From: Monocercomonoides exilis PA203
Lineage: Eukaryota > Protista > Preaxostyla
Assembly (NCBI GenBank): GCA_001643675.2
Contig: LSRY02000064.1
Span: 186,001-250,000 of the forward strand
DNA length: 64,000 nucleotides
Direction: 5' to 3'
The notes beneath the pieces are model-generated. The model was not told the origin of the DNA. It did not search any database and saw only the letters and a list, made by a program, of their open reading frames with translations. Shown in pieces: positions 20,786 to 61,217 of the stretch. A program made the position numbers and the translations under genes. Within the stretch, counting starts at the first letter, position 1; every line of letters begins with the position of its first letter.

Positions 20786-21698
20786 GGCATAAGTATAAAA
20801 AAACGCCTCCTTCAGTTTTATGATTTTCTTAATTTCAACAAAATTATCATAAATAACATTAAAAAACAACACTTTTGGGTGGAGCAGTTTTATGATATTT
20901 CAACATAAATTTCATTAAAAAATTTTTTGTGATCAATCCCTTAATTAAAAATTTTCTTGTTCATTTTCTGTTTTTAGTGCGAAAGCGGAAGAATCTCAGC
21001 TTGATTGTTGCAGCCAATAATGCATTTCTTGCGATGTCATAAATGAAGTTAGAATTTGCACTAATTTTATTTCTTTAAATCTGTTATTCAATAAAAATTT
21101 CGCTATCGCTTATTAATCAATAACAATTCATAATATTTAATTGAAAGAAGTTTCTCTCAATGAAAGCCAATGTCACAGAAGATCTGATGATTATGAAATA
21201 CTCATATTTCCAATTTTATTAGAGAAATCAGTAATTTATGTATTATTTATTTTTTTGAATTGAAATGCTTTCCATTTGAAATGAAGGCTATCGCTCTTGT
21301 TTTTTTATTGATTTTGCTAAATAAGACATAATTGTTTGATAACGATTATTGTTCATTTTGTTTTTGTCAAATTGTCTCAAATAATAAAAACTGTGAATGA
21401 AAATACAAAAAATGTGCAGTATTCACGTGATTTATTTTTTGAGGGCTCGTTTCATCAAAATGAAAAGAACGAAAAACTTCAAAATGAATAAATGCCGACG
21501 GAAGATGTTTATTAATTGTTAAAGAAGCTGCTCGTAATAAACTTGAAATGCGGTAACAATCTCGATGTGTTCCCAATTCCACAACATATGAAATTCTATG
21601 GATAAAAAGCCAAATTTCGAATCGGTTCAAAAAAAGTTTTCGCTTCTATTTTCATTAATCTCCAATAATTTCTGTATTATGCATGAACTTTTAGAATA

Positions 21699-30526: not shown

Positions 30527-31400
30527 CCTTTGGAACTTTAAAAGTTATTTGATCTTTGTTTTGAAAACGTTAATTTTGAATGATTGATCGATAACTTTAT
30601 AAAAAAAACTCGATAACATGCACATATGCATTCGATCAAAATTCAATGTTTCAAAATGAATTGATTTGATTGTTCAACATTCTAAATAAATATAAGTGAA
30701 ATTTTTGTATAAGAACATTTATAATTTTCTAAACAAAATTGAACATATTTTTATGAGTTGTTTTCAAGGAAACTGAAAAGAGATAATCGACAATTTAAAA
30801 ACTTAAGATTGAATCATATTTCTCGAAATATTCAAATATGGTTATTCGTTTTTTGATATGTTTTTTTTCTAACGAAAGAAATTGAAATGTTCAAAACGAT
30901 GTGCATATAAAGTTTTCCTTGCACAGAGAATGCTAATAGAAAAATCAACATATTCAAATTGATTACTGTCAAACTTTGAAACATTCAAAAGCATGTTTTT
31001 TTCACAATAAAAACAATCTCGTATGTTTTATCGTGTCAAGAGTGGAATTCTCAAGTTCGAATAAAATATTAATCAAATATCTAAATTCAACAATGATATG
31101 ACCTGTAGCTCTTGTTCATTTGAAATAAACAAATTGGTACTAAAATCTATCAAAGATTTGTTTTTGCAGTTAGAAAGAATATGAAGAATTTAATGAGTAT
31201 TCATGAAAAAGTCGAAATAAAAGTCAAATATTCTTCAGAACAACTATCTTAGAAGAGTTTTCATTCAGTTGAGCTGTATTACATAAAGATTGATTTTCAA
31301 TTATTGCAACTGAACATTTCAAGTGAAAAAGATGATTATGAAAATTTTTAATTAAGGGATTGATCACAAAAAATTTTTTAATGAAATTTATGTTGAAATA

Positions 31401-38380: not shown

Positions 38381-39989
38381 TATGGGTGATTTTTTTTGAT
38401 ATCATAAAAAATAACGAAGTTTGATCATTAAAAATTTTCATAAAGGGTGAGGTTGTAAAGATTAATTTTATTTGAAATTGCATGAAAATATAGATCAATA
38501 TATTATAATTATTTATTATTTGTTGATTTTAATTAGTTTCCAATTGTTTTTTTTTTCAAATATCGAGAAATAAAAATAATTTCAAAAAAAAAATCGAAAA
38601 TTCGATTAACCTAATAAAACATAAAAACAATAATAACAATACGTAATCAATCAATTTTTTATATAAAAATTAATTTTATGATGTTATTGCAAAGAAATTT
38701 TTAATTCAATTTTGAAGATCATAAAACATTTGTTGAATTTTATCAATTCACATTAACACTTACGCAAAAATATAATAGTAACATAAGACTCTCATCAAGT
38801 AATCAACTGTTTGCTGATAAATTTGTTTGTAAACAAGTAATCTTAGAAATATTTAATTATTATCTAAATATCAAACAAAGTTTAAGATAAGTGAAGAAAA
38901 TATTAATAAATGAAAAGAAACTCGTCAATTTTTGCTTTTTCCACGTAAAAAGCTTTTATCGCACGAACATCTTCATTTTATCTTCCTCTCTTCGTTTCTC
39001 CTCTGATTCTCTCTATCTCCTTCTCATCAATTATATGTCATCCAGTTATCTGCCTCCTTAGATGCTCTGTTTTTGTCTGCCTGTTCGTTTTGAAAACAGA
39101 TTGGTTAAAAACCAGTTTCACATGAAAGGATATGAACAACAAAATGGTGCATGAACATAAAGCGCTGAACCACAGTTCCAGTATCTTTGTCGTTCCACTT
39201 TCTCTGTATCACTTCTGCATCCCATTCCGTGAAACTCGTATACCTCTGATCGCTTTCCCATTGCTCGCTGGCTCTGCTCTCGTTGTCATTAGCCCATCCG
39301 CCCTGGCTGGCAAGGCTGCCTTGAGGTAACTTCCATAGACATCAGAAAAGTCTTCGCTTTGGACTCTGCCTGAATCACCTTTCACCGCGCTCACCAGATA
39401 TTCGTTAACCAGCACACTGGCTTCTCTTTCCATCAGTGTGGCTCCCCGCTTTCCTCCGCGCTTCTCTCTCCACAGTCGTACACCACATCTCCCCTTCCAT
39501 CGACAACATCCTCTGGATCAAATGCTCCTCCTTCTTCGAAGCCCTAACCTCCCTTGCAGACATCCGATCCGAGTTCGTACAAAAGAGTCTTTTTCTTGTT
39601 CTTTTAAACATTATCAGTTGGCTACAGACGTATTTCTCAATGGCTGAATCATCCTTAAAGTTATTCCTCCCTCTATTTCTCCCTTCGCATCCCTCCTCTT
39701 TTCCCTTTCTTTCCATCCTTTCCTTTTTCTTTCTCTCCTTTTCTTTCATCCTCCTTGCCCAGATCTCATCCTCTCTGACTTGCAGTCCTTTTATTTCTTT
39801 CTCAGTTAACCTCAACTCCGGAGGGCGTTTCAGTATGAGGCCAAAATCACTTCTTCTTCATAGCACACAAGCTTTTTCATATGCCATCCATCAACAGGAA
39901 GCAACAGCACGCTGCCTTCCATTATGCTTCTCCGCCCACACATCTCAGCACATCCGACCCAGTGGTGGAGAAGAGAAGGAAGTGTGAAA

Positions 39990-42900
39990 TGGAGCGAGCA
40001 CTGTTTTTCTTGAAGAACAGAAGAAGAAGAGGAAGATGAAGAAAACGAAGAAGAAGAAGAATATATAACTGAGTCTGAATGTGGAGACGATGTCGAAATA
40101 GTCAGTCGAGTCTTTTCTGAAGAGGATGAAGATGATTTTCCATCTGGTTTTGAAAATGCTTTTAGATGAGAAGCAATGATACCATTTGGCGGATTTTCTG
40201 CATCATCTTCGTTTTCCTCGTGTGCGGTTTCAGGAGAACTGTGAGTTGTTGCATTTTTGGCTTCATTTTCTCTTTTTTTCTTTTCTTTAACATTTCCTTT
40301 CTCAGATTTCTTTTTGGAAGAAATAGAATAAGAGAGCAGACTTGAAGATGGAGAAGAGGACAATGAAGATGCAGAGGAAGAGGAAGAAGCAATGGAAGAA
40401 GATAACATCAAAGAAGAAGGTGATACAGACGAGTTCCTCTTCTGACTTGCTTCCGGCTTCTTCTGCCTTTTGATTTCAGATGCATTTTGCGAGAGAGATG
40501 AGAGTAGATATGTAATAGAGATCGGTTTGAGGGTGTGGCTGCATGCTTCTTGTGTATCCTTGAACGTGGTTAGCTGCAATAAAGAAATTGTTTGATGACA
40601 GATGTATTTTGAGAGGCTGAAGAAGAAGTTGAAATAGAAGAAGTTGAAGAAGAAGGTGATGATGATGATGCAGTTGGTACAGCTGTTGAATGAAGAGATA
40701 TGGCCGATACTGATGATCTGGGTTTTGAATGAGATGACTTTGAGGAATGAGTTTGTAAAAAATGCAAAGAAGAGGAAAAAGAAGAAGCAGGAGCAGATGT
40801 GCTTGGAAATGGCAAATAAGGCTGCGAAACTTCAACTTCACTTCTATTAGGAAAAAAAAAACGAAACATAAAGACCTCTCAAATTTATTATTGAATAACG
40901 CCTTCACATTTTCACTTTGCGTTTTCTCCGAATGTTTTCGTTCTTTTGAAATACAACTCTCTTCTTCATCTTCTTCTTTTGATGTTCTTTTGAAGGAGAC
41001 AAGTTTTCTGAAATTTTATCTTCTCCTTTTTCTATAGATAGAAATGTGATTTTATTCTGAATGACATCTGCAAAGCTTCCATATTGAACAACTTGCCAGA
41101 AAAAATTATTGATCTTTTCGAATCGACAGCGCCTTCATTATCCAAACAACTGGAGGCGATTCGAAATGCTCCTTCATCAACATATTCCTCTTGTTCGCTT
41201 CGCTTTTGAAGTTCGATTCACTTCTTTCAATCTTCATCTTTTTCAGATACGAAACAAATACCTCTTTCTTCTTCTCAGCCTGCTCCAGCGCATTCTTCTG
41301 CTAGTCTTCGAGCTTTTCACGTTTTTTCTCAAAGTACTCATTCTCTTCCTCCAGCTGCTCCTTTGACTCCTTCTCTGCCTCTTTCTTCTGCATCTTCTCT
41401 ATCTTCCACTGCGTCGCTTTCTCTTCCTCAATTCTATCGATGCGGCTTGGAATGGCTGACAATTTTGGCTCAGGAAAGCACAGTGACGAAGTAGGAACGG
41501 ACACTGTGAGGCAGAAGAAAGCGAAGATGGAAGAGAGGAAGAAGGAACAGGATGCCACATTTGATTGGTGGGAGATGGGGTGCTGGTGGAAGAAGGAGGT
41601 AAAGAGCATATTGAAAGAGGAGGCGAAAGTGATGATGGTGAAGAAGGCAAAGCATTGACAATCTGATTGTTATCAGATGAAATTGGTGTGGATGACGAAG
41701 AAGGAGATGATGAAGATAAGGAAGAAGAAAAGAATGATGCTGATGTAGTTGGCTGAGGAGTTGACTGAAGAGTTTGATTCGGTTCAATTGACATTGTGAT
41801 AATTGCATTTTGCTGGTTAAAAGGCAAGTTTTTCATTCTTTCTGCTTCTCTTTCTCTTTCTTCTCTCAGCTTCCTTTCTTTTATTCGCCTCAATCTTTCG
41901 TCAAATTTCATTCTCGCCTTCGTTTATTGCTCCTTTCTCTCCTTCTTCCTTTCGTTCTCCCCCTCTTCTACTCCTCTCATCACATCCACATCTTTCACTT
42001 CCTCCTCAAACAACTTGTCATCTAAAAGCGCAATGTTACAAACAATTATCAGAGTCTGCATCCTTTCGCTTATCAGCGACGAATTCAGTGAAAGAAAATC
42101 TGTATTCTTTTTCTTCTCTTTCCTCCTCTTCATCCCTACAAATGAAGCATGAATGCTGCTTCGTGGATCCTTTGCGTATTTGTTGGAACTTTGTGGAGGG
42201 ATCAATAAAGAAATCTGAGGGATAGACAAAGCAGAGGATGATGATTGAGAAACAGATGGGGTCAAAGCTTTGTTAGCAGTTGTATTCTTTGACATAAAGA
42301 AATCATCATCTTCTTCTTGAAGCAGAACCATGTCATCCTTGCTGCATTTCTTCCTTTTCGCGGTCATTTTGGATTCATCCTTTGGATCGCGGAAAAACGT
42401 CTTACTGCTCCGAGAAGAGGAAGAAGATGTTGAAGATGAAGAAGAAGAAGATGATGAAGATGAAGCAACTGAATATGTGTCACGAGCATGCCTGTCTTTC
42501 AACGAAGCTGATTTCGACACTTCAGACTCACTTCCGTTCAAAACACTCTGCTCGCTTTTCCTTCTCTCTTCTTCCTCTTTGTCTTCGACAATAAATTGCC
42601 CCTTTCCTCTTTTGTTTTTCCTCATTGCATTCTCCCCTACAGCTTCTGCTTCCTGCTTTTTGACAATTGAACATTTAAATTCTTCCTCTGCCACAACTTT
42701 TCCAGCCGGCTTCCATTCTTTGAAGGACAAATAACAACAGATGTTTTGCTTCCAACAAATGACTTCAAATGGATCATTCTATCAACTTTTCTATTTGAAG
42801 TTCCATCTTTCTCTATCTTTTAATATTTCTCATGTTCAATTCTTTTTCCTCTTTTTCTTCCTCTTTCATTCATTTTTCATTCTCGTTCATATTCTTCATT

Positions 42901-44900
42901 TTCTTCCTGTTGACCTCTTTTTCTTTTCTTCCCAGCATCTGCCTGAAGAACTCCACCTCAAACAAAAGGGCATCGGCATAACAGAAGAACGATGGATGGA
43001 AAAGCGGTGTTAACGAAGGAGAAGAACACATCAGAGTGAATAGGTGAGTGTGTGGGTGTGTTATAAAAAGAAGGTGCGCGTTTTGATGAGTGAGGGAGTT
43101 GAGAAAGAGGCAGCAAAGACAAGGGTGGAGTCGAGAGATGGAAAGCAGAGAGGAAGAAGAGAGAGGATAAGGAATTGTTTGTGTGATTGAACTGAGGCAT
43201 GGCTCACTGCTGTCAAAGGAAGTTTTCACAGAGGCAACTGAAGAAGAAATCGATAAAGATGTTGCTGTTGTGTTTGCAAAAACAGAAGCAGAACTTGACG
43301 ACGATGAAAAGAAAGAAGATGCATTTAAAGTCATTCGAAATGTTGTTGTTTGAGCATCTGCTGCTTGATAAATATGCTTGCTTTTGTGGGAATTCGGATG
43401 ATTCGTGATTGTGGGTACAATCATACCTCCTCTCTCTTCTCTCTCTCTCTCTTTTTTTTTTCCTCTTTCTTTCTTCATAGTTATTCAAGTCCAAAAAATC
43501 ATGCCTGAAACGTCATAGCTCAGTTCATTTTACCTTCCTTCTCCCTTAATACGCGAAGCAGAAACAGAAGAATGGCACACCAGTTAAGAACAAGGTGATG
43601 AATTTTAAGTCAATTCCTTATCTTCCTTTTCATGTTTTGTCATTGACGTTTTATCTTTGTTCTCTGTCAGCCAGCTTCACTCTTTCTGAGATCAGATCCT
43701 CCAGCGACTCAAAGAAGATGTCCATTTCTCTGCCCCACCTCACTCCACAAACATGATTGAATAAAATATCGATGCTGGAGTGAATTAGATATTCTATGAA
43801 GAAATTTGAGATTGTTCTGTTTTAGAAGAAAAAAAGGAAGAAGAGGATGATGAGGAAGAAGAGGAAGAAGAGGAAGAAGAGGAAGAGGAAGAGGAAGAGG
43901 AAGAAGAAGAGGAAGAAGAAGAGGAAGAGGAAGAGGAAGAGGAAGAGGAAGAGGAAGAGGAAGAGGAAGAGGAAGAGGAAGAGGAAGAGGAAGAGGAAGA
44001 GGAAGAGGAAGAAGAAGAAGAAGAAGATTGATCAATAGAAGAAGGAATCCAAATAGAAGATTGATACAATGAAGAAGAAGAAGAAGAAGATGATGATGAC
44101 GAAGATAAAGGTGAAGTCGAAGAAGAAGGTGGAGAAGAAAAAAGTTGGAGGAAGGGTCAAAATATGATGCAGAAGAAGATTGTATTGCTTGTTTTGAGGT
44201 TGATGGTGATAAATCAGATGACAAAGACGACGAAGATGAAGAAAATGAAAAAGAAGGAGAAGGAGTGTTGTGTGCAGAATGTGTCTGTCGGAGAAACAGA
44301 AGCTTTTGGGTTGCATTTCTTCGAATGAGAATGTTCTCATTGGCTTATTTTGGAATTCATAAAAAGATGAAGATAAGCTGAAGGAATTAAATAGCAATGG
44401 AAAGAGAAAGAAGAAGAAGAAGGTGAAGAAGACGAAGATAAAGCAGCAGAAGGCGAAGACGACGAAGAGAGTGAAGAAGAAGAAAGTGAAGAATAGGAAG
44501 AAGAGATAGAAGAGGAAGCAGAAGATTATGAAAGCTATGAAGGTGGAGCAATTGATAATTGTGAAACGAATTTAATCCTTTTTCAAAGATGTTGATAATG
44601 ACTTGAGGAATATCGATTGATTAAAATAATTCATTCGCTGAGTTGATTTCAGATGATATAAACAATATTCATCACAAAATATGTGAAAGAGAGAGAGATA
44701 CAAACAGATGAAGAAATCAGTCCACAAATTATCTACTGCCTTTGAGCGGTTGAACTGCTTTGCACCTCAGAAAAATAAAATTGTGTTTGTCTGTTGGCGT
44801 TCATAATTCAAACGAACGAAACATCTGATAAGCGTATGGGCAAAGAAGAATTCGAAATCGAAGAAGGCGTTGACAATTGATGAAGTTGTCTTCAATGGCA
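39990..44900 (-). pseudogene. Decayed large Ser-rich/coiled-coil host-type gene
   Basis: Chain of - strand ORF pieces with poly-Ser and E/K-rich segments, broken by stops and frameshifts. Confidence 0.55.
43835..44027. repeat. (GAGGAA)n/(GAA)n microsatellite encoding poly-Ser on the - strand
   Basis: Seen directly in the sequence. Confidence 0.95.
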
Positions 44901-47900
44901 ATAATTTCAAATTCAAAAAGAAGAAAATGACGAATTTTATGATTATGTGATTGATGTGTCGATTCTGGCAATGAACATCATTTATTGAAGCGAGACTGTT
45001 GAGAATGATAGCGAAGGTGAAAAAAAATAGAAGATATCAGCTTTTCCAAGTCATATTGAGCAACAGAAAAAACTGAATGTGTTCTAAATGTGAATGCCCA
45101 GTCAGCTCATCATCCCCGACAAAAGAGTCGCAACTGCAAAACATTCCGAACAAAAATGCCAAATAAACTGCTTTTCTCTTTCTTGCATACTCATGTTAAG
45201 CATTGTCAGGCTATGCAGCATGCAAAACAGATGGTAAGAAACGAATGTCATCGTTGAATGCCATCCAAACAAGGATAATCTCAAAACTTCTGAATCCTTT
45301 GAAAAAGGATAAAATGGCTTCTTTCCATGGCATTCCTGTTCATGACCAATCTGTATTCATTCAAAGAATACCATTAAAGAATAATGAGTCAAATAAAAAA
45401 AAGTCAAACCATCTTTTTGGCCTTGAAATATTTTCCCATTTCCAATGGATTGGTGATAATCAGCCCAGCTGGCTTTCTTGTTCTCCAAAATTGCATCTTA
45501 CCACATAAAAAACAGATAACTGGACAACAAATGGCTGACAAAGAACATCATCGAAAGCAGAAAATCCTTTATGAAACCGATAATGATGCAAGTGAAAGAT
45601 TATATTATCCAAATGATAAAGAAATGAGCTCCTTTTCAATGACTTATTCAACGCCATGCCTTTGTTGATAGTTTTCCAAAGGGTTTCACGTAAATGGCAA
45701 TGCGTTTGTTGTTAAGGCCTGCTGAGTGTCTCGCTGTGTTCGCTTCTTCCATTCTTCAAACCCCCAATTCCCTATCCTTTTCCATAAAACAAACCTCCCA
45801 ATTAAAAATAACGCAAAACAAATCCCACTCAAATGATATGTCAATCGCACTGCATTTCCCTCGAAATGAACAAGCGGTTCAATTCAATCTTTCTGAAATT
45901 CAACTCGCTTTTTTTGCATCTTGCTTGAGTTATTTCTCATTCAAAATACAACAGCTGATGTTGTATCATATGTTTTGTTATATATAACCAAGTTCAAATA
46001 TCATGCAACTTCCTCCACTAACTCACTTTTCGCAAACAATATTGGAAAACAGCCACTCGCTCCTCACTCCATAGGCAAAATCCCTGCTCTTCTGAAATGC
46101 TATAACTCGCATGGATGTATCCTTGGTCTTGCATCAAAGCAGCTCAAACATGCTCTGGCTGCAGCAAATAATTTATCAAAAATCTTCACTAATAAAATTA
46201 TAGGTTGGACACCCTTATTAATTAACCAAACAATAAATGAATGCTTTGTTGCCCTTCGTCTTGCCTGTCTTGAGGCAAAAGACAACAAATGACGCAGAGG
46301 AATAAGTTTATGCTTGTGCATATTCTGGTATTTTAATCGATATTTGTTACACTTTTGATGCAGATGTTCCTCCAACATTCAGATAATGAACCAATTTGTT
46401 GCTTCTGTTTGATTTTGCCGAATGCAGCAGGGCAAGCAGCTAATGCTTCAGGGTGTGCTCCGGGCATATTGAATCACTGCTTATGCGATTTTATCTGTTC
46501 TTTTTTTATTATTATGAAAAAAGAAATTATTTATTAACTTTTGAAAGGGGCTTAGGAGATTGAACAATTTGAGGGACCTGGAGCAAAAAGGGAAAAGCGA
46601 AGAAATGGATGGAATACGGGAAGATGTGAGATTTGAAGAGACGGCGCGATTTGTGGGGTGAGTGGTTGGAAAGAAAATGGAGAAAATGGTGGATGGAAAG
46701 GGATTGGGGTTGGGGTTGAGATTTTGGCATTGGAGCCTTTGGGGGTATATTCAAAAGGGCCAAAGGACTTGAGGGACAATGACTTTTTATTTTCGTTCTT
46801 CACTGAGGAAAAGCTACAAGAAAAAGAATTTTGATGAAAAGAAGAACGAATAAGAAAAGGATGAAAGACTTCTGGGGGAATGTTTGCAATGGAACGTAAT
46901 TCTGAATGAAGGCCTTTCAGTGGAATTGGTGTTGATTTGTGTGGCTTGCCTGCTGAAAGGTGTGTTGGAGAAAGAAGGAAAGGGAGGAGACTCAAAAAGA
47001 AGTTGAAATGAGTTTGCTGCGAGAGTCATTTTCACACAACATTCAAGTGTGTCTTATTTTTTTTTTTTCAATTTTATTTTATTTTATTTTTTTTTTTTTG
47101 AAATGTATTTGTATTGAATAGGAAACAGACAGCGAGTGATATTTGAAGGAAGAAGCAGGAAACATCAGATCCGATCAAAAACAACGCAATTAAAGGGGAG
47201 TTGTTAATGGATAAGTTTTGGAGAAAATGATGAAGAGATTGACGAAGTGCAGAGAGATGGAGGAAGTGAGTATGAATGAGCTGGGTTTTTGAGAGAAGAT
47301 TCAAAAGAAGTGGAAGAGATGGGAAAGGATGTGAATTGGAAGAGAGAATATGATGAGAGAAGGGAGAGAATGACTGAACCCTGATGGGGGGATGTTGCAA
47401 GAAGATGAAGAAGAGGAATTTGAAGAAATCAACATTTTCAGTTTCTGAGGGAAAAGAGGAGGCGACCACTCAAGTGCAGTCAATGAACAGTGGATATCCA
47501 ATTCAATTGGTATGCATCAATCTGTTTGTTGAATTTTTTGTGATTATGTTTTTCTTATCAATATGAAGATAACTTATCATATACAATATTTTTACTCAAT
47601 GACAGCATCACATGAAGCCTTTTCATCATTTTCTTCAGAAATATCATTCGATTTATTGTACATTTCTCTTTCACATCATCTCTTTTTCTTCTTCTTCTTC
47701 ATTCAACAAAAATGAAACTTTTCTTCAATTAAACAGAGCTTTCTCCAAGCATCTTAACTTTTTGATAAAATGACTTTTTTTCATCTTTCAACAGAACTGC
47801 TGTTTATTCTTTTTCTCCTTCAACAGTGTACATTGTATTATAATAAATTGCTTGCATTGTTTTAAAACCATGATAGATAATGTCCAATTGTCAGATGAAT

Positions 47901-48090
47901 TGATTATTTAACAAATTACAAAAAGTGATAAAATGTTCATATTGGAGAAAAATGAAAAAAGAAATTAAAATTGGAAAATATGTGAACTTCAAAAAAATAT
48001 TAAAAACAAAAAAACAAATAATGAACGATGTTAGAATAATAACAAATTAATAAAATAAAAATTAGATGAAGAAGATGCAGTTTCAGATGC

Positions 48091-48365
48091 ATTTCTGAAA
48101 GATGAATTATTATTCTTTCATTTTCACTGATATTCCATCTCGGGCTGACACATTTTTGATGCAAATCATCGCGCTGATTGCGATTATTGTCGCTTTTATA
48201 ATTGTCATAAAATGAGAATATGGTTTTTCACTTCATAAAATGCATTGTTCTTTAATCATAATAAATAATATAAAATATATACACACATATTTTTAAGACT
48301 CAATAAAATACAAAAACCAAGAAAAACATTGCATTTTCATGAAATTTTGTCAAATTGAACATCTC
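48091..48365 (-). repeat. 275-bp arm X ending in a Sola-type terminus; inverted copy at 53933-54207
   Basis: Reverse complement of 53933-54207. The first ~53 bp from the GAG terminus equal the left end of the full Sola element. Confidence 0.9.
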
Positions 48366-48697
48366 GATCACAAAAGTGGTCACTAATTTTTCTTCAGATT
48401 TTGCAACAAACAGACATAAAAAGATGTGGGGAAGCGGTTTGTGCGGAAATCTGAGAAAAAATTAGTGACCACTTTTGTGATCGCCAGTCATTTCAATTTT
48501 CAGTTTTATAATAGTTCCGATCGTTCAACGGATCAAATCTGATGAGAACCTTAATAAAAGTGTTTTTCTAATTGACTGGCGATCACAAAAGTGGTCACTA
48601 ATTTTTTCTCAGATTTCCGCACAAACCGCTTCCCCACATCTTTTTATGTCTGTTTGTTGCAAAATCTGAAGAAAAATTAGTGACCACTTTTGTGATC
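48366..48697. repeat. Two inverted copies (48366-48482, 48581-48697) of a 117-bp self-complementary GATC-to-GATC unit U
   Basis: U = GATCACAAAAGTGGTCACTAATTTTT...AAAAATTAGTGACCACTTTTGTGATC. The inner flanks GCCAGTCA/TGACTGGC extend the inverted repeat around an ~82-bp spacer. Confidence 0.93.
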
Positions 48698-51600
48698 GAG
48701 ATGTTCAATTTGACAAAATTTCATGAAAATGCAATGTTTTTCTTGGTTTTATTCATTATTAATATATTTTCTTATATATATTCGTTTATGATTTGTTGTT
48801 ATTATGTTATTAACATTTGTTTTAATGAGAAACATTTATGCGTTGATTTTTGTTTGAAGACGAAAAATTGTGATATCAGTTTCCAATATCAGTTCATCAT
48901 TTTGATAAAATTAAATTACATAAATATTTATTTTTTGTGTGAAACATAGTGTTTTTCACCGAAAAAGAAATGTGACTTTTGTTCCATAATAAATTCAGAA
49001 AAATAAAAACAATGAATATTTCCAAACCTCAATCGACTCTTTATTCTCGATGCAAAGTTATTTGGAATGAAATAAAGCGCATCGGCGGAGATGACGTGGA
49101 TTCATTGCTTGTCTATCTTTTATACAACTACAGGCAATCATCTTCTGTTATTAACGATTTGCTGAAGTCTTTGAATGGTTTGATTTTTATTTTTTGAATT
49201 TTTATATAGAAAAATTTATGAACTGTCATCCTTGTCATTTTCTTATTTTTTTGTTTATTATTTATTTTTTTGAAATAGAATATCACATTAAGCTGCTGGA
49301 AGACCTGTCTGTGGTGTACAACAACGCACCGTTGCACACTCAGACAACAATGCTGCAAGCGCTTACCCGCAACACATCATTATCCGATTTACAGGACTAT
49401 GGATATGATGTCACAGAGGGAAAATTTATTTACGCGAAACAAACGCTGAAGAAGAACCAAGGATTTATTGTCCCTCCTCAAAAACCTCATCTTCCGTCTT
49501 GCAAAAGTGGTTTGTGTTTATTCAAATTATTTTTGAATTATTTTCTATGTTTATTTTAGGCTTAAATGAACAGGACTGGGAAAAGGGCAACAACTGGATG
49601 TTAGCCCATTCAACTGAAGCCTCAACTTCTCTTCAATCTGCAAAGAAAAAGCAGAGAGCTGAGCCAGATTACGCAAGATTTATAGACGAAGCAGCGTGGG
49701 AAGATGAAATAATCACAGAAAACTCTTCTTCAAAAAGAAAACAATCTTCTTCATCTTCTTCAACATCATTTCAACAAAATAAAAGTTCAAGTGTTATTTC
49801 AAAAAATAAATCTTCTTCATCAAATTCTTCACCGTCGAAAGCTGTTGATGCTCCAATAAGCACTCCAATAAGGAGAGAAAGGTGTTCAACAAAAAGAAAA
49901 ACAAACAAATCACATCGTGAACGACGTTCGTCTCCTTCTCCAATTCCAATTCACAAATTCTTCAAAACAAAAAAACCATCAACATCTTCTTCTTCTCCTC
50001 CTCCTCCTCCTCCATCTTCCTCTTCTTCACCTTTTTCTTCACCTTTTTCTTCACCTTCTTTTTCATCTTCTTTTTCATCTTCCTCATCTTCCTCTTCTTC
50101 CTCTTCTTCCTCTTCTTCCTCTTCCTCTTCCTCCTCTTCTTCCTCTTCATCCAAAAAGCATCAAAAAGAAGCAACAAACACTTCTTCCTTCAGCAACAAT
50201 GATGTATGGGTTAGTGATAAATTGCTTGAATATGTCACTTCTCCCACTCTTGTTCCTCCACAGGCATTTCAAGATCTTCTATCTTCATTTGCAAAAGACA
50301 GCATCACTTCTGCATCTCAACACAAAACCCGCGAAGACTATAGAATTTGTTCAAATCATGAAAATTCTTCGCGTATCATGAACAACAAAAACACAATGGA
50401 TATTTATTCTTCAACTTGTTCTCCTTCTCCATCAATTTCTTCAAGCGTCAAAACCACTGCTATCACCTCATCAAAAACTCAGAAAGGATTAAAAAATCTT
50501 GGAAACACTTGCTATCTTTCCTCTCTTCTTCAATGCATGTCTTCAATCACTTCACAAAATCAATCAATAATTAAAACCACATCATTAAAAAACAATTTAT
50601 CTTCTCGAGCATTGAGTGTTTGTCGACAACTAACCAAAGATGGAATGGCGGTGCGTTCGTGGGTCCCATCACTGATCAACAAATGGGAAGACTATTGTGG
50701 ATATGGAAGCAGACAGCAACAAAATGTTACTGAGGCGTTTGACAATCTTCATCAACTTCTTCAAAAAGATGAGTTAATTAAAAAAGATAGCTTCAACCCT
50801 GTTTTGATCACTCATTTGAAATGCCAGCAATGCCAAAAAGTTTCAAATCGTTTCAATGAAATTGTCAACAATGTAGTTATTAATTCATCTTCTCCTCATA
50901 AAGGTCTATCTTCTCTCTTTTCTACTGAGATATTGAACGGAAAAAATTCTGTCTATTGCAACAATTGCAAAGAGAAATGCTGTGCTGCTCGATGGGAGGA
51001 AATGACTGCATTTCCAGAGGTGCTAGCCCTCTGTCACGAATGCACTGACAATGCTAGTTCTGCACCTTCAAGAACATTTCAAATAGAAACTGACAGAGTT
51101 AATCAACGCACGTTTTGTAAAGGGTTTTCAGAAGAAAATATTAAACATCTTCAAAAAGATAATCAGGAAACGATCATCTACCATCTAATTGGACAAATTC
51201 TATTCAAGCGTCTGGATCTCCAAAATGGACACTACATCGCTGTGATCAAAAGAAAGAGTGGAAACGATATCAAATGGAATATCTGTAATGACGCTGATGT
51301 GACAGAATTGAACATCGAAAATTGGACAAAGTCATGGAAGGAACTTTATGCTCAAGGTTTCACTCCGTCACTCTCATTCTACATCAAAGAAAAAACAAAA
51401 CCAACATTTTCGACAATTCAATTCGGCGGTTCTTCTTTTTCATCTTCTTCAGAAACATCTAATAATAACACTTCAAATAACTCATCATCATCGTCGTCGT
51501 CTTCGTTGTCATCATCATCATCATTCATCACTCCACTTCATCCAACAACTTCCATTCCACAACTATCATCATCAATTACATCTTCTTATGGATTGGAAGC

Positions 51601-53815
51601 TTTGAAAGAAAAAAGAAAGAAAATGGGCATTTTTTCTCCCAACGAGAAAAGATTAATCTTCAAGCCCAAGACAAAATTGTGGAAAGAGTTTTCAGAAGAA
51701 ACAAATATTAAAGTTTCTCTTTCCCACTTCTATAAACTCACCACCAACTTCTCCAAAGCGAAAAGACGAACGGATCTCTGCGGAATGTGTGAAAAGTTGG
51801 ATTATTTGGAAACCAAATTAAAGTGTTCGCAAAACAAAAATGGACTGTCTGAAGCAGAGTTTCATACACTTAAATTACTTCGTCAACATCGACTTGTTGC
51901 AGAAATGCAACGAAAACATTATCAATCGACTGTCGACAATCTGAAAGAGGGGGAAGCTGTCTTCGTCTTCGACTTTAAAGAAAAATGGAAACTCCCTATC
52001 AGAAAGAACCAACTTCAACAAGAATTCTTTAATTATCAACAGGTTTCTCAATTCACAATCATCTCTCTTCAAAAAATTAATAATCAACTAATTAAAAGAA
52101 CATTCAACTTCTTCTCCGACTGCCTCTCAAATGATCACAGATTTGTTATTGAGTGTCTGGAATCTGTGATCAAAAGACACTTCTTCTCAGACACTCACAC
52201 TTTTAAGTTCTTCTGCGATTCTGGTCCACACAACAGAAATCGCTTCCTTCTTCACTTCATCCTCTCAAAACAATCAAAACTTCTCAAAAAGAAAAACACT
52301 CAACTCAACTTCTTCGCTGAGCACCATGGAAAAAATATCTGTGATAGTGAATTTGGTGCGTTAGTGAATTCAATCGACAACAATCTTTCGACAGAACACA
52401 TCACAACACTTCATGATTTGATCAACTTCTTCGAAAACAACATGAATACTTCAACATCAGCTTCTTCAACTTCACAATCAAACATTTTATCAATAACGTC
52501 ATCAAACTCTTCACCATCGTCAACATCTGTCAATAACTTTGAGCATGAGAGGTACTTTGAAGAATATGTACCATCTCGACAAATCTCATGGCCATCATTG
52601 TCAGTCCCTCACATGAAGGATTATTTGTATTTTGAGCGCAAGGGCACATTTGTCTGTGCTTCAGCTGTTGGATATCTTCCTCAACGCTCTCTGGTTGCCC
52701 TCGAATCTACAACAATGAAAGAAAAAGTTCAACGAACAAGGAAGTCATTTCACTCTGATATCACATCATCTAACTCTTCTCTTCTTTCTCAATCTTCTCA
52801 AGATCTTCTTTCAAGGAGATTTGAGCTTCTTCTTGACTCTTCTTCTTTTAATGAATCTCAAAATTGTTCTTTTGGTGTCCCCTATTAAGAAACTAGTTGT
52901 TGTGCATGCTTAGCTGGCACTCTATCGGAAGGGTGCTGGACATGACTGTTCGTATTAGATATTGCAACCTTCGGGCTGCAATATCCGGACCTGGATACGA
53001 CGAACAGCCTCCCAGGTGCACAATAGTTAGAATCCGATTGTTTTCTTGCGATTTTTGTCCCTATAATGTCCCTTTAATTAAATTGGTTATTGTCCCGCTT
53101 ATATTTGTATTTATCGAGATTCATTAAAAGAGAGAGTTGTGAGGGAATTCAAAGATCTTTGAGTGAGGTTTTTGGAAGGGAGAGTTGTTGGGAGCGTGAA
53201 GTGATGTTTTATCATTGTGTCTGCTTTTTTTCTTTGTTGGATTTGATCTTTTTGAGTCAAAGTTAGGGAAATATCAGAAAGGGGAGAGTGGATGGAAAAC
53301 GGAGGGAAAATAGACAAGAATGTTTTTGAACTTTTAATATTAGTATTCTTTTTTGTTTGGAATTGTCATTGACACCATGAATTTGTTGAAATAGTACTGT
53401 TTCTTCTTGTATTTTTTATTGTTTAAAATTGTTGATATTAAGTTGATATTCGGTGATTGTTTAATGATAATGTGATTGAATTTTGTTTTTTTGAAAGTTA
53501 TTGAATCTGATTTGAAAATTTCTGACTGTTTTCAATTTTTAAAATGATTAATATCATGAATTTCTTTTTGTTTATTAATGTCATTTTGATTGCAAAACGA
53601 TTGCTATTTTTTTACGAATATTTTTTCACTTATCTTTGTTATTTTTTCACTTGTTCACGAAAAAGTTTATCAATGCACATGTCATATACTTATATAAATA
53701 TCTATAAAATTAATTTTTCTAAAAAATCGAAAATATTGTAAAATAAATTTCAAAAATATCACATTAGACAACAAAAAGCTAATATTTCATAAAAATATGT
53801 CAAATTGAACATCTC
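48698..53815 (+). mobile_element. Sola2-like DNA transposon, 5118 bp, ~31-bp TIRs, GATC on both flanks
   Basis: GATC|GAGATGTTCAATTTGACAAAATTTCATGAAA ... TTTCATAAAAATATGTCAAATTGAACATCTC|GATC. The first 18 bp are identical, with 3 mismatches in 31. GRG termini and 4-bp duplications are Sola2 hallmarks. Confidence 0.82.
49012..52888 (+). CDS. Sola2-like DDD transposase with an embedded USP (peptidase C19) domain; exons 49012-49177, 49279-49509, 49560-52888 (~1241 aa)
   Basis: Two GT-AG introns join three ORFs in phase. USP at ~50486-51385: GLKNLGNTCYLSSLLQC, QQQNVTEAF, CQQC/CNNC, NGHYIAVIK, WNICNDADV. Transposase: TDLCGMCE, VFDFKEK, FFSD, FCDSGPHNRN, FFAEHHGKNICDSEFG. Confidence 0.88.
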
Positions 53816-53932
53816 GATCACAAAAGTGGTCACTAATTTTTCTTCAGATTTTGCAACAAACAGACATAAAAAGATGTGGGGAAGCGGTTTGTGCGGAAAT
53901 CTGAGAAAAAATTAGTGACCACTTTTGTGATC
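53816..53932. repeat. Third copy of the 117-bp unit U, with a Sola-type end on each side
   Basis: CATCTC|GATC...GATC|GAGATG. Confidence 0.93.
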
Positions 53933-54207
53933 GAGATGTTCAATTTGACAAAATTTCATGAAAATGCAATGTTTTTCTTGGTTTTTGTATTTTATTGAGT
54001 CTTAAAAATATGTGTGTATATATTTTATATTATTTATTATGATTAAAGAACAATGCATTTTATGAAGTGAAAAACCATATTCTCATTTTATGACAATTAT
54101 AAAAGCGACAATAATCGCAATCAGCGCGATGATTTGCATCAAAAATGTGTCAGCCCGAGATGGAATATCAGTGAAAATGAAAGAATAATAATTCATCTTT
54201 CAGAAAT
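53933..54207 (+). repeat. 275-bp arm X (Sola-type end), inverted copy of 48091-48365
   Basis: Direct sequence comparison. Confidence 0.9.
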
Positions 54208-57200
54208 TTATCTGAAAGCGATTCTTTTTTTAATGAGTATTTTTTTGTGATTCAACTCGTTAACGTCAAATACTTGCTGTTAATTTCGTATGCTGCACAG
54301 GGCACATATAGCAATTTGTTCTATGCGTTGAACACAAACTCTGAAGCGAATATTAACGAATATTAGTGGATGAAAAGCGAGAGACGAACGACACGCTTTT
54401 TCGGATGCAAACCCCACTGTATAATTCTCTCGCAAGTTCCACTTTCCTTACAGTCTATTCATATACTATGGGAGAGGGTGTGGCAGCTTTATGGGGTCAT
54501 ATTTAGGCCATCACACATTGCTGATTCAGATTATTGTGGTGTAAGCAGTGGAGAAAGAGGAGGCAATGGTTTCATCCAAGGGCTTAACATGTCAACTTTG
54601 GATATGTTCAAATTGACATCGTGTGTGGCAGATGCACTGGAGAAGGAGAAGATCATCCGGCCGAATGAGATTGTGATTGTGGAGCATGCGCAGTGCATGT
54701 CACTTGAAGAGGAGGTATTTGAAGAGGCGAAGCTTGATGCGCCCAGAGCAGCAAACTTTGTGGACCAGTAAGTGAATACAGCTATTTTCAGCAAATTTTA
54801 GTTTTTTTCATTCAATATTACCTGGATTCTCGAAGGAGAGGGAGGTCAGGAAAGCAGAAAAGAAGAAGGCAAAATATTTTGAGCTTGATTAAAGAAAAGA
54901 AAAAAATTTCAAACAGATCGTCTAATGCAATGGCGAAGATATGAAGCAATGTGGTATGTTAAAATTTTCTTTTAATTATTGCAAATAATTTTTGTGTATT
55001 TATTTTAATATATATATATATATTTTTTATTTTTGTAATTTTTAGAACTTTTTTTTCATTATTCATTATGAACTTCCTCTTTTTCTTGTAAGTTGATCGC
55101 AACGGCCATTTTATGAATTTGTACGTTGGCAACATGCATCGAATTGCCTGTCTGAACTGTATCTGCATTGAAATCATTGATGCGCTTGATCTTTTTAGCT
55201 GTTTGGACTCACTCAATCAACAACCAAAAAGTTTCGTGAAAGAAGTGATGAAAGAGCAATTTTTCATTTTAAAAGGTTTGCACTATTTTTCGATAATTGT
55301 TACAATTGTTTTAATCATATTTCTTATTTTTCTTTTTTTAACTTATTCAAACTCTAATTTTTATTTATTCAATCAATTAATACAAAAAAATATGAACCAT
55401 CCGTTTTCATGTTTTTATTTCATTCAACCTTTTCTTCTAAGTTTGGGTAATGTGTCTTTTCCATGTGCTCTTTCCAGCGTTTTTATTGCCATTGGAAAAA
55501 GAACAGATAAAAAAGACTGAACAAGGAGTTATCTCCCCCACCCTATCTGCCACCACTGCTATTTCAGTGACACAGCTGACTGAGTCCTCCCCGCTCACAC
55601 TGGATTCATCTCCTCCTAAGCTACTCGAAATTAACTCTCTTCATCATCATCGCCTTGTTCTTCTTCTCCTTTCTGAGATCAGTCATCCGCAAACCGCTTT
55701 GATGCTTCCATGATTGAGTCAATTAAGCGCCCTTCATATTCAGCAAACATCCTTTCATATTTCTAACAAGATACTTCCTCTTCTGCTTCACCGCCAATTA
55801 TATTTTGAGAATATTTCTTCTCCATGAACCTTCAGATCTCCTTCTCCTCTTCCTCTCAACAGTTCCATTTTGTATTGATACTTCGTATTAGCTCCCACTA
55901 AATGCTCTCTTGCATATTACAATCTCTTTTAATGGCATCACTTTCATGAACTTCATCTCAACAACAACCAAAGCTGTAAAATGCTCACACAGCACAGACT
56001 TTAACGAATCTTCAACATCTTCCAACTCATCGAAATGTTCTTTTTCTTCTTTGATGTCCTCCTCATACTGAAGGGATATCAATAAACAGATCGCTCTATT
56101 CTGTCCATCGTAATAAATCACTTTCACGTCTGTTACTTGCTCCTAAATAAATAAAGTTGTCTCTTTCTGTCTTTCCAAACTTTGCACTACCGCTGCTGGG
56201 CTTGTGTTCTTCAAATTTGAGATTTGCCCCTTTATGTGTGTAACCTGCAGAAGTCAACATTAACTTAAGTGGAGCTACCAATTCTACTTCTGGAGGAACA
56301 AACGATTATCCACTTTGAAGCATCAATAGATGTTTGTGTTGGATGAGAGGCAATGCTACTGCTCTTCTTGTCTCACATTATAAGTCGACAACTCCTCTTA
56401 TGGAGCGTGTTGGATGCAAATATGGGAACTCATTTATAAAAAAACCACATACAGGGAAACGGGGAAATTTGCGTTGCATAACTGCAATCTCCTGTGAAAG
56501 TTTCAGATGAGACGATGAATAAATTATTGTTCCCGTACGAGATATTCGTTAATGATATGGAGGTTATTTAGAGAAAGAAGGAGCAAGAGAGAAGGAGAGA
56601 AAGATGGAGGCTTCAATAGAATAGGAAATGAAAATGACAAAAGAAGATTCTCGCCTTTGGAGATATACGGAGAAACCTTATTGAGTTATTCATCTTCCTC
56701 ATCTTCCTTATTGAAGGCAAAGACGTTTGAGAGTTTTACAGGAGGAAAAGAATAATTAATAAAAGGCGATGTAATGACAAGGACAAAATATCCGTGACAA
56801 ATTCGTATGACTACCTGTTGTCTTCGATGTCGTCTGAGCGGAAGTGAAACAGAGATATCATGCACTCAATTGCAAAGAAGAGAGACAAAAGAGGAAGTAG
56901 CAGCGGAGGGGGAGTGAGCGGGAGTTGGAAAAAGAGTTTTGTGTTCTCCTTCAACCACTCATTATCGGGAAATGTGCAGCTCCTTTCTTCGCATGTTCTG
57001 TCAACTACATCGTCTGCTGCATCTTCAATAGCATTATTTATTTCTTTGTCCAAGCTCATCGTTTCGTCTTCTGCTAATACCTTCGTTTGCATCAGGCAAG
57101 TATCTGGAAATACATCCTCCTCTTCACATTCTTAGCATGACAATAGGAGTAACTTAGCGGAATTACTGAATTATCAATTTTCCGTCTCTCCTTCCTCAAA

Positions 57201-59949
57201 GATTCTTTTTGCAGGATAGCCTTCATTCTCTTTCATCTGATCGCTCATATCCTGGTCACCTTAGTGGTAAAAAAATGTTAGAAAGATTGCGTTATCCACA
57301 CGCAAACCGTCTATCTCATTGTTCTCCTAATATTCATCTTCCTCATCTTCTCCGGAAGAAACTGACCTTTCTCTCCATCCAAAACCACCTCATCGTTCTG
57401 AAATTGCTATGGCTCGCCGCATAAGAGCAATGCATCCTCTCCTCCGCCGACGCCATCTCAACCGCTGTGCACAAGTGGCTGCTGCTTCTGGTGCTTCACG
57501 TTCTTCTTCCTCTTCCTCTTCTTCCTCATTGCTTCGCTCTTCTTGAAACAGATTTCTGACAGGAGAAGAGCAGCAGATGAGGAGGATGAGATTGCAGTTC
57601 GGAAGAAGAAGGAAAAGACAATATTTTGTTTTCCCACCAGATGTGTTTGAGGCGCTGCCGCTGTTTGCAGAGTTTTGGATGGTGGAGCGGTATGCGGAGA
57701 ATCTGGAGAATAGGAAGAAGTTGAAGGCGATGAAGATGACTGAAAAGAAGAGGATCAAAAAGTGATTTTGGAGGATTCAATGAACAACCCCAATGCGGTT
57801 GTTTGAAAAGCAATGATAACAAACGGAAGCAGAAAAGAATACAAACGCAAAAGAATCTTCACAAAACGACATTAAAGGCGAAACGAACAATGATGAGCCA
57901 AAATTAGAGCCTTTTTCATAGGAAAAGCAGCAAAAACAACTCCCTTTCCCCCACCTTCTCCTTCTCCTTCTCCTCAACCTATACAATCCTCTTCAGAACG
58001 AGGCACCTTTGGAACAATACACTTTACGCGAGGGAAGCGAATGGACGGTGGATGAAGAGGAGTCGGAGGGAGAGCGTTGATTGCGTACAGCCAAGAGATG
58101 GAGATGGGGAGAGGGGCTGTTGGTGCACAAAAAACGCTTCCATCAACAGTTGTTGTTGTTGGAGGAGGAGCGGTGATGTTGAGTGTTGTATGGATGAAGA
58201 ATTTCAACAGAGAAGAAACAAGGGCGATACAAGATGAGTTTCAGAATGAGAAAGGGAAGGTGGACGATGAAGAGGCGAAGATCACGTTCAATTCATTGGA
58301 ATCTGATGATCAGAGATAAAAACTACTTCTGCTGATGAAACTGCAGGATATACAGAAGAAGAAGAAGGAAAAAGAAGAAAAAGACATGAATCCGTTTGCA
58401 GCATCCAAGGAATACTGCAGATGCACCTTGAGACAGGCACGCCAACCAACCAGAAAGAAAATAATGTGGCAAGCAAGGAGTAACAAGAGACGAAAGAAAG
58501 CCAAACGCCAATTTTGACAAGAGAGCTGAAATTGGACTGCATGCTGAATGACCTCGCTAATTCTGACCTGGAAGATTTGAGCGATGAACCGGATGTGCCC
58601 TGCCGTTATGTGCGTGTCAAAAGCGAGGAAAACGGGCAATTTGCGTGGAAGATGGGAAAAGTGCCTGTGTATGCAGCAGTCGATACGAGGCAGACAGGTG
58701 TGCAGCTGGATCTGATGAGCGCGCTGAAGAGCGGGCTAAAGCTAAGCCAGGCGGAACTGCGAAGAGAAAGCAGAAGCGACACACAGGAAGGGAAGGAAAG
58801 GAGCAGGGAAAGGATCACCTCTGATGTTTCAAAAGGAGAAAGGGATAAGAACATTCAGTTAGAACAACGTGCCTGGGAGAAGAGATGCGCTGTCGTTCTC
58901 AAAATTGGTATCTTTTTCCGCTTTGCAGAATTCAACTGCGACGGATTCGATGAAGAAATATCCTTCACTCAATTTGGTAGCGCCTTTTGATTCAGCTGCT
59001 GATTTTGCTTCAAATGAGAATATTTCTCTTCATCCTCTCTCTAACTGCTCTTCTTCGCTTGTTGATTCATCCTTTTTATGAACATCCAACTTCAATTTTC
59101 TCCTTCTTTCAGAATCTCTTCATCTCTCTTCCTTTTATCTCAAGCTGTTCATCCATCTGCTTCTAATCCTGCTGCTCCTGGCTCACTTTCTCCACTTTCA
59201 CTGCCTGCTCCTTCTTCTTCTTCTTTTTCATTCAACTATCATCGAGTTCAGTGCCAGGCCTCATCTTTCGTTGCAACTTGGAAAGAAACAAAGAAATACT
59301 TATTCTCGATGATACATCAGCTTAAGTTATATGTCAACTGAAACGATTCTCCACAAAGCAAAGAAAAGTCTGCAAGTTATCAACAACTGAATCAATTCTG
59401 ACTTTTTCATTTGGAGGCTGAAGCATTCGAAGTGAAAAGGAAAGGGCATTGAAGCGATTTTTGTTTGGAATGGCTGGGTTCCTAAATAGTCTTCGGCAGG
59501 TTACACAGCTACGAAGTCACAGTAAATTGTTGGAAATGAAACGATGAGTGAGAAAAGCTATTTTGAGAAAAAGACTTAAGTGAAGAGAAATAATATGAGC
59601 CTCTAGCGCTAATTGGATACAAGCAAGTTGAAATCGGAAAGGTGAAGAAAATATAATCTGAAGAAAATTACTAGATACGTATGAATATATTCTTTTTGAA
59701 GATACAACAACAATGAATCTTTTTTCATGAGCTTTGTTTTCATTCGATGAAGAAAAATTAGATGAAGAAATTTTGAAGAAATATTTCTAAGTGAGCTGAT
59801 GTCAAGGATTTTGATAAAATAAGTGATGATATTTTCTTCAGTTGAAAGTGATGTGAAAGCTTATGAATTTTTCTATGATATGGAAAATGGTGAAAATTGG
59901 AAAATGAAGAAAAGGAAAGAATGCAAGAAAAAGTTCATTATTTCCTGTG

Positions 59950-60140
59950 ATTTATGTATCAACCACGCTGAAGGTGAGTGTTTGAGTTGGAACAAATGTT
60001 GATGTGAGGAGGGTGAGAGAGGCGTCTTGGAGGAGGGAAATGAAGCCGTTGAGGGCATACTCGATGGTGGCACATGGGGTCTGTTGGGGTCTGCCACATG
60101 TATCAGCATCAATTCCATTGAGGATAACAATTTTATTCAA
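59950..60140 (-). pseudogene. Short captured fragment of the same surface-protein family as 25840-26675
   Basis: NGIDADTCGRPQQTPCATIEYALNGFISLLQDASLTLL here vs NGGSDVDVCGRPQQIPCAAVEYALTGFISLLQDAFLTLL at ~26 kb. Confidence 0.8.
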
Positions 60141-61217
60141 AACGACGAGGAGGAGCGAGCTGTTGAGCTCTGCTTAATCAATTTATCCACTTCTTCTGTT
60201 TATGTTTGATGAAGCTGCTGAACCGAATAAAAGGAAAGGAAATTTGTTAGCTGTTCAAAGACGAAAAGAAAAAAGAGAAATAACTATTATTTATAAATTG
60301 GTTTCAATAATTTTGTTTTCTTATCGTTTTTTCTGTTCTTATTTTAAATTTTTTCTTTTCAATGTTTTGTTTTTCCAGTTAAGAAATATCTATTTACCTT
60401 TTAAAGATTGGTTTTTCAATTTTTATAAAACTTGATCAAAAAATTCTTTTTCGCCAAAAACATAAAAAATGTATGTTTTTATCTATAAATAAATAAAACA
60501 AATAAATATAACAGAAATAAAAGCTAAATACTTGCAAAAAATCATTTATATTCTTTGATCATTAAATACCACAAAAGAATTTATTTTTTCGATTTTTGAT
60601 CTTTTTTTATGATGTCAAAAAAAATCACCCATATCATAAAACTGCTCCACCCAAAAGTGTTGTTTTTTAATGTTATTTATGATAATTTTGTTGAAATTAA
60701 GAAAATCATAAAACTGAAGCAGGCGTTTTTTTACACTTATGCCAAACCATTCAGTGTTTTTCTTTATTAATTTTTAATGAGCAAACAATAAAAAAATTTA
60801 ATTGTCTTTTTTTTTAATTTTCTAAATACAGCACCTTCCAACACTTTTCATTTAAAACATATCTTCTAAAAAAAGACATGATTCTTATATTTGAATGTGT
60901 TTCTTTTTTCTTTTTTCACACTAAAAATTATGGGTTATGCACCAATTGGGATTACACCGTAATCGATTACTTCACAAAAATATTATGTTGGTTTGATCAA
61001 AAAGAAACAAAAGATTTCCTTTTTTGGCTTCACACAGCAAATCCTTGGGGCTTATTCGCATTTTCTTTTGCACTTCTTTTTATAAAGCAAAAATTTAACG
61101 GTTTGTTTTACGATCATTTTTATTTTGAGAGATAATCAATGTTGTTTGTTTTTATCTTTTATTTTGTTGCTTGTAAAGATTTTCCTTTGTTTTGAAAATT
61201 TTTTTAAAACAAGCAGA

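Follow-up and report, generated by a model that had tools for sequence, protein, structure and literature searches.

Ubiquitin and SUMO proteases recur in unrelated transposons, and the reason for this has been an open guess since 2010. The question is raised again by a locus of Monocercomonoides exilis PA203, a mitochondrion-free protist, at which a deubiquitinase (DUB) domain of the USP class lies inside the transposase of a Sola2 DNA transposon. The locus was analyzed within a stretch of 64,000 nucleotides (contig LSRY02000064.1, positions 186,001 to 250,000, forward strand), which is termed the window and whose own numbering is used here. An initial annotation had described a 5.1-kb element with GAG..CTC terminal inverted repeats (TIRs), flanked by GATC on both sides and containing a single spliced open reading frame (ORF). 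Is the USP a maintained part of this transposase, what could it act upon, and with which unit of DNA does it travel?

Reading the ORF with GT-AG splicing gave a gene at 49012-52888 with three exons, 1241 codons and zero internal stops. Its parts are as follows.

49012..49177, forward strand: exon 1, N-terminal helical region.
49279..49509, forward strand: exon 2, N-terminal domain with homology to relatives that have no DUB; ratio of nonsynonymous to synonymous divergence (dN/dS) about 0.09.
49560..52888, forward strand: exon 3, end of the N-terminal domain, Ser-rich linker, USP, Ser-rich linker, CxxC, DDD core and stop.
50468..51403, forward strand: USP/peptidase C19 domain, with the Cys at 50510, Gln box at 50714, zinc ribbon at 50822 and 50957, His at 51230 and Asn-Asp at 51287.
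51593..52885, forward strand: Sola2 transposase core, with the CxxC at 51779 and Asp codons at 51971, 52217 and 52343.
52900..53030, forward strand: GC-rich, putatively structured 3′ segment, in which copies differ less than in coding DNA.

Both of the predicted GT-AG introns (49178-49278 and 49510-49559) were kept in five further copies, in one of which the intron-2 acceptor reads AAG/G, and the NCBI model P0001 shares both splices with the window gene. Together with read-through of the exons, these observations bore out the single uninterrupted frame of about 1241 amino acids, and the domain order given by the initial annotation (helical N terminus, Ser-rich linker, USP, Ser-rich linker, CxxC, DDD core) also held. 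Exon 3 was open in the window copy and in the copy at locus L001; one to four point stops, and no frameshift, were present in the other copies. The nearest proteins were uncharacterised MONOS genes of M. exilis with 90-93% core identity, the loci of which were taken from GCA_001643675.2, and the contigs matching the stretch represented many divergent copies. An assembly chimera or a single-copy accident was ruled out by the presence of seven close and two distant copies.

Sequence and fold searches were run exon by exon or domain by domain, not on the joined protein. The Pfam UCH model matched the USP domain with an E value of 4.9e-16 (59.5 bits against a cut-off of 23.9) over domain residues 7-284. 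All of the predicted USP motifs were located: the triad is formed by C450 in GNTCY (nucleotide 50510), H690 in GHY (51230) and N709-D710 (51287), and the zinc-ribbon cysteines are in CQQC at residue 554 and CNNC at 599. Sequence matches in the PDB were USP15, USP36 and Ubp8, and Foldseek matches were likewise USP-fold proteins, obtained with a model of low confidence (pLDDT 52). The domain was present at the same place in 7/7 close M. exilis copies. A second family, family B (represented by L007 and by a further element at L005), has a core identity of 39-43% to family A of the window and holds a USP in the same slot, with 23% identity and with the Cys, His, Asp and four zinc Cys residues kept; hence, the USP fusion is older than the split between the two families. 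Apart from single-copy decay, the triad residues were conserved in both.

Selection was assessed by pairwise Nei-Gojobori comparison to the window copy, for which the copies are non-independent. The USP gave dN/dS values of 0.20-0.29 (upper bounds of the 95% confidence intervals, 0.28-0.41), and the core gave 0.09-0.14 in the same comparison. The USP is, therefore, under purifying selection and is neither neutral nor specific to one copy. Synonymous divergence was 0.85 for the USP versus 0.35 for the core, an about twofold difference, and identity along the gene was patchy, both of which suggest recombination between subfamilies. The linkers on the two sides of the USP were 591-1092 and 171-228 nucleotides long, every length being divisible by 3; this is supporting rather than decisive evidence, since triplet-repeat slippage favours such lengths. 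As judged from conservation of the frame, the USP would be translated in the same polypeptide as the transposase. The conserved triad and the selection on the domain make it most likely that the USP is active, as an isopeptidase for ubiquitin or a ubiquitin-like modifier, and we consider such activity quite probable. The placement of a USP with an intact triad between disordered linkers within the N-terminal part of the transposase was, thus, upheld.

No Pfam model matched the transposase core, for which 676 relatives were found. Its motifs comprise CGMC at residue 873 and the catalytic residues D937, D1019 and D1061 (nucleotides 51971, 52217 and 52343). Across 76 aligned relatives, no variation was seen in the CxxC, in the second Asp or in the H-x-K-x-x-x-D motif, and the first Asp was nearly invariant. 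AlphaFold predicted for the core an RNase-H DDE fold (pLDDT 85.6), in which D937, D1019 and D1061 occupy the DDE positions (strand 1, strand 4 and the helix after strand 4); by Foldseek this model matched IstA, Hermes and Mos1, and structural matches to Mos1, Metnase and integrases had Z scores of about 10. A by-eye comparison, rather than a computed alignment, of the clade consensus with the published Sola2_DFa-2 and Sola2_PPa-1 found agreement in the motifs and in their order, and by eye the N-terminal helical block was similar in these proteins and the window transposase. By these sequence features, to which 4-bp AWWT target-site duplications (TSDs) and GGG..CCC termini are added below, the core belongs to Sola2, as had been proposed.

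The slot occupied by the USP was compared among relatives. In published Sola2 proteins and distant metagenomic relatives, an S..R motif nearly abuts a KRL/K.L...F helix. In the nearer clade (P0008, P0157, L011 and L014) the slot is a low-complexity linker of 90-270 amino acids without a recognisable domain. A further relative, P0015 (run SRR25904989; locus L009), shares the N-terminal exons and holds in its slot a DGxC...HYW domain, the nearest Atlas clusters of which were OTU (score, 0.93); Pfam and PDB searches of this domain gave no detection. In a core tree made up of unclassified relatives only, families A and B grouped with the DUB-less P0008 (94/93) and the P0015 group came next (85/81). 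The simplest reading of this order is that a short loop became a disordered linker, which was followed by two independent DUB captures. The presence of two DUB classes in one slot points to selection for deubiquitination itself. At L009, an apparent partial second copy of the C-terminal half of the OTU-like domain was also seen upstream (P0015 residues about 100-190 and 285-450).

The source of the USP was sought in the same way. No USP was found in relatives outside M. exilis, and neither the protein database outside the element nor viral contigs yielded a USP, of the host or otherwise, similar enough to be placed in a tree. The nearest by language-model features (0.96) were compact Nucleocytoviricota USPs (ESM Atlas clusters, UCH of 260-290 amino acids), which share with the window USP a compact UCH domain; the likeness is one of features only, with no alignment-level relative. 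Giant-virus USPs are, hence, only a lead on the origin of the domain.

What the USP does for the element was weighed among four explanations. The best single reading overall, which we hold to be somewhat favoured, is that the USP works in cis, deubiquitinating the transposase or transpososome and so preventing its removal. The loop before the core would have expanded to a disordered linker and later captured a compact USP, which on its flexible tether would strip ubiquitin from host proteins nearby as well as from the transposase or transpososome, thereby countering a ubiquitin-dependent turnover that limits transposition. Several observations weigh against this. Splicing of both introns is predicted from sequence, and the P0001 model additionally leaves out a 1.1-kb stretch containing the Cys box. 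The USP consensus has a QQD box and an Asn after the Cys-box aromatic residue; the Gln box of family A reads QQN-V-x-E and that of family B QQE, and the aromatic residue is followed by S, so that activity or specificity could differ. The DUB would also be dispensable for transposition, because many relatives are without one, and the evidence fits self-protection and chromatin or repair substrates alike. The skip in P0001 is also what favours regarding the USP as a neutral passenger or as a segment that is spliced out. The donor of this skip is missing from the window copy, in which the frame is open at that point, and dN/dS far under 1, frame-preserving linkers and retention in family B all contradict neutrality; this explanation is largely refuted and retains only a slight probability.

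The USP might alternatively have kept its fold and triad while acting on SUMO or NEDD8, or it might be mainly a ubiquitin-binding module or a self-cleaving protease. The non-consensus residues of the Gln and Cys boxes would be consistent with this, as would the faster evolution of the USP than of the core (dN, 0.20 versus 0.045) and the finding that many transposon proteases are SUMO proteases (PMC2836005). However, both family A and family B retained Cys, His and Asp, all of the nearest matches by profile and by features were UCH and the other occupant of the slot is OTU-like, and we regard such a change of function as quite unlikely. A less improbable suggestion, though still an unlikely one, is that an active USP finds its main substrates at the donor or target among proteins of chromatin or DNA repair (ubiquitinated histones, PCNA or repair factors) and steers repair of the break. 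Fusion to a DNA-binding protein would place the DUB at the break, and a role of this kind was proposed for transposon Ulp1 and OTU proteases by Bao et al. 2010 (PMC2836005). Against this, no substrate-targeting domain was present besides the transposase, and structural comparison gave near-tied matches to USP35, USP36, Ubp8 and USP1 at 15-20% identity with a weak model, which is uninformative on substrate. Protection of the transposase in cis is the function that we prefer.

The unit that carries this gene was larger than the 5.1 kb of the initial annotation. Homology between copies continued for kilobases beyond the proposed ends, up to common GGG termini with TIRs of about 28 bp and of two types, and such GGG..CCC termini were found in families A and B. 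These, and not GAG..CTC, are the ends of the element. Sola2 termini reportedly follow a 5′-GRG..CYC-3′ rule, which Bao et al. are said to have formulated in 2009. Complete elements were L003 (19.1 kb, TSD ATTT), L004 (20.9 kb, ATAT), L008 (17.4 kb, ATTT/ATTA with one mismatch), the family B element L007 (15.1 kb, AATT) and the window unit at 38384-60630 (22.2 kb, ATAT). Except for the L008 mismatch, all of the TSDs fit 4-bp AWWT; the ATAT of the window was shown by an empty site. The features of the outer unit are as follows.

31402..60630, forward strand: last-mobilised unit, 29,229 bp, GGG..CCC ends, TSD ATAT (31398-31401 and 60631-60634); a composite of broken element X and the 22.2-kb unit.
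31402..31429, forward strand: outer left TIR (28 bp), position weight matrix score 32-34.
60603..60630, reverse strand: outer right TIR (28 bp), position weight matrix score 32-34.
31402..36527, forward strand: deleted member X, right TIR interrupted at TA by Tc1/mariner.
38384..60630, forward strand: Sola2 unit with the USP-transposase, 22,247 bp; ATAT precedes the left-type end at 38384, and the arms are colinear with those of other copies.
20786..20967, reverse strand: empty paralogous target site, outside the element, with a single ATAT.

The empty site consists of the left flank of 31402, one ATAT and the right flank of 60630, with 100% identity over 80 nucleotides at the junction. This junction indicates that it was 31402-60630, a length of 29.2 kb, that moved in the last jump, which was recent. 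After X lost its right end to Tc1, the transposase presumably used the next right end. A unit of 22-29 kb with GGG ends, an ATAT TSD and an empty site, thus, replaces the smaller element. The window gene would serve as the autonomous gene in a family of giant cut-and-paste Sola2 elements (15-29 kb), the DDD transposase of which would bind the short GGG..CCC outer TIRs and move the whole element, including kilobases of arm DNA. Integration would duplicate a 4-bp AWWT target, duplication being evident from the TSDs and the empty site.

The GAG..CTC boundary is part of a set of inverted repeats and palindromes around the gene, listed here.

48081..48483, forward strand: left inner inverted repeat, 404 bp, 92.6% identical to 53815-54217, flanking the transposase cassette.
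48313..48750, no strand: palindrome of 438 bp, with spacer 48365-48483 (119 bp), mini unit 48483-48580 (98 bp) and spacer 48580-48698, joined at GATC.
48698..53815, forward strand: inner transposase cassette, bounded by 31-bp GAG..CTC repeats and flipped between copies.
53785..53963, no strand: right palindrome around the third spacer (53815-53933), DNA fold z -15; the inner inverted repeat reaches 54217.

The 31-bp inverted repeat and the flanking GATC described earlier do exist, but they are not a TIR and a TSD. An identical 119-bp palindromic unit occurs at 48365-48483, 48580-48698 and 53815-53933, joined at GATC, and GATC appears on both sides because it is self-complementary at the junction of a palindromic unit. 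The GAG sequence points outward from the 119-bp units four times, at 48365 and 53933 without a partner end. Separate neighbouring elements docked on the spacer were considered for the ends at 48365 and 53933 and were rejected, as there were no partner ends and the arms continue to the GGG termini. Four copies (82-84% gene identity) had no GAG..CTC ends, and L005 had the spacers with different gene-side ends.

The inner 5.1-kb unit could itself be a transposon that inserted at GATC in a palindromic target, with the flips of the cassette being due to excision and re-insertion. GAG is valid as a Sola2 terminus (DFa-2 begins with gag), and the inner ends have a weak likeness to the outer TIR, being in the top 0.7% of window positions. 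Nevertheless, they scored -5.5 on the matrix of true ends versus 32-34 for real ends and were missing from the gene side in five copies, no TSD was detected at the outer edge of the inner repeats in any copy, and the unit was not observed within unique flanks. We, therefore, judge a separate inner transposon very unlikely and treat the GAG..CTC unit as a cassette of the larger element.

This cassette is inverted between copies. When the window was compared with L008, both arms were colinear in reverse while the orientation of the gene was unchanged. The arm layout of L004 was that of the window, in L001, L003 and L008 the end type upstream of the gene was the opposite one, and L005 bore the left-arm sequence of the window on its right. 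Within-copy identity of the gene-flanking inverted repeats was 99.8% in L005 (605 bp), 99.2% in L008 (1389 bp), 96% in L004 (1413 bp) and 93% in the window (404 bp); those of L001 and L003 were older (69-76%). The repeat sequences were unrelated between subfamilies. The likeliest cause of the flips would be repeated inversion with homogenisation of the repeats, probably through recombination between them.

Further observations were made on these elements. The 119-bp spacers and 98-bp mini units were also present in L005 (7625-7957 and 13407-13738) and L006 (12795-12913), besides the window (48365-48698 and 53815-53933), and contig depth over them was well above that of adjoining DNA; they may be a separate high-copy family resembling miniature inverted-repeat transposable elements. 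The GC-rich segment directly 3′ of the stop codon is hairpin forming; family A copies are 91-96% identical over it, which exceeds the average for coding DNA. In family B, a segment at the corresponding position has short motifs in common with it (L007 about 12130-12230 and L005 about 6200-6300). The segment at 52900-53030 had no Rfam match and is a candidate structured 3′ RNA. The Tc1/mariner element in the right TIR of X (36528-37903) has a CAGT end at TA and a DDE_3 ORF of 420 amino acids at 36641-37903; its far end was not found.

An additional element with inverted repeats of about 300 bp seemed to surround the Sola2 units in the window (about 40 kb; repeats at 20786-21089 and 31329-31401/60631-60743) and in L007 (1298-1600 and 19586-19887). 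The 29-kb unit is inserted in one of these repeats, and a preference for nesting in them is possible. The element at L006 1975-19105 was chimeric, with two right-type ends, an upstream arm of the L001/L003 subfamily, a downstream arm of the window's subfamily and exons 1 and 2 absent. The arms of the window unit (39400-47500 and 54300-60200) contained Ser-rich host-like ORF fragments that were 66-88% conserved between copies, and the block at 59391-60160 was common even to family B. The four arm ORFs tested had no Pfam match, Tc1 aside. Outside the element, an imperfect palindrome of 987 bp (87%) was present at 27370-28356.

Taken as a whole, the findings allow a broader proposal, which we put forward tentatively. 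A Sola2 lineage of metamonad type may have a "DUB socket," filled independently by USP and OTU and revealing a previously undescribed, ubiquitin-based host restriction of DNA transposases; in M. exilis the armed transposase would drive cargo elements of 15-29 kb in which the transposase cassette inverts between repeats that homogenise each other, perhaps to switch expression. The occurrence of a USP and an OTU in one slot suggests that the host fights these elements through ubiquitin. A single transposase clade offers a natural comparison, with the slot empty, filled with a linker only or holding an OTU or a USP, with at least two copies that have an open large exon and with measurable selection. 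Whether ubiquitin restricts DNA transposases, and whether elements counter it, is testable by one point mutation. The repeats of M. exilis are mostly unclassified (28.9 Mb; PMC8767320); a large, apparently recently mobile part of them can now be named, and Sola2 is extended to 29-kb composite units.

A literature search, from which most subscription journals and Repbase Reports were outside scope, found no report of a DUB in Sola or of these giant elements. The initial claim that no USP was known within a Sola transposase, thus, stood for Sola; its novelty was overstated, as both the functional ideas and a C19-transposase, Trichomonas vaginalis XP_001314237.1, appear in Bao et al. 2010 (PMC2836005). 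The concept of DUB-bearing transposons and a USP-transposase fusion are, hence, already on record. As described by Bao et al. 2010, XP_001314237.1 combines transposase_11 (PF01609) with peptidase C19. Compared by this description only, it resembles the window protein in having a USP/C19 on a DDE DNA transposase in a metamonad host and differs in belonging to PF01609 (an IS4/IS5-like superfamily) and in being described there as a single protein, with neither selection nor a family analysed.

The closest published elements are the amoebozoan Sola2 DFa-1/2/3 and PPa-1/4/5, which are 10-15 kb with AWWT TSDs and short TIRs (Bao and Jurka 2013, PMC3627910). They share with the window the motifs TDxCxxC, DFKE, S-x-x-L-x-H/N-D, D-G/S-x-x-H and HGK-x-x-x-D-x-x-F, the N-terminal helical block, a 4-bp AWWT TSD, short TIRs and extra DNA. 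In contrast, they carry a separate Fanzor ORF and no insertion at the loop, whereas the window family has the USP inside the transposase, reaches 15-29 kb and holds its gene in an invertible cassette. Among other transposons, Ulp1 in Mutator, OTU in Helitrons and both in Ginger1 were described, and a role in repair was proposed, by Bao et al. 2010 (PMC2836005). The VTD DUBs of Helitrons are active and K48 cleaving, DUB classes interchange and protection from the proteasome has been proposed (Erven et al. 2022, PMC9741609). Ginger1, Mutator, Helitron and Helentron are, thus, like the window element in that transposon proteins carry ubiquitin or SUMO proteases and in that DUB classes swap (VTD and OTU), but they involve other transposase families and protease clans, whereas here a USP, and in a relative an OTU, lies inside the N-terminal part of a Sola2 transposase.

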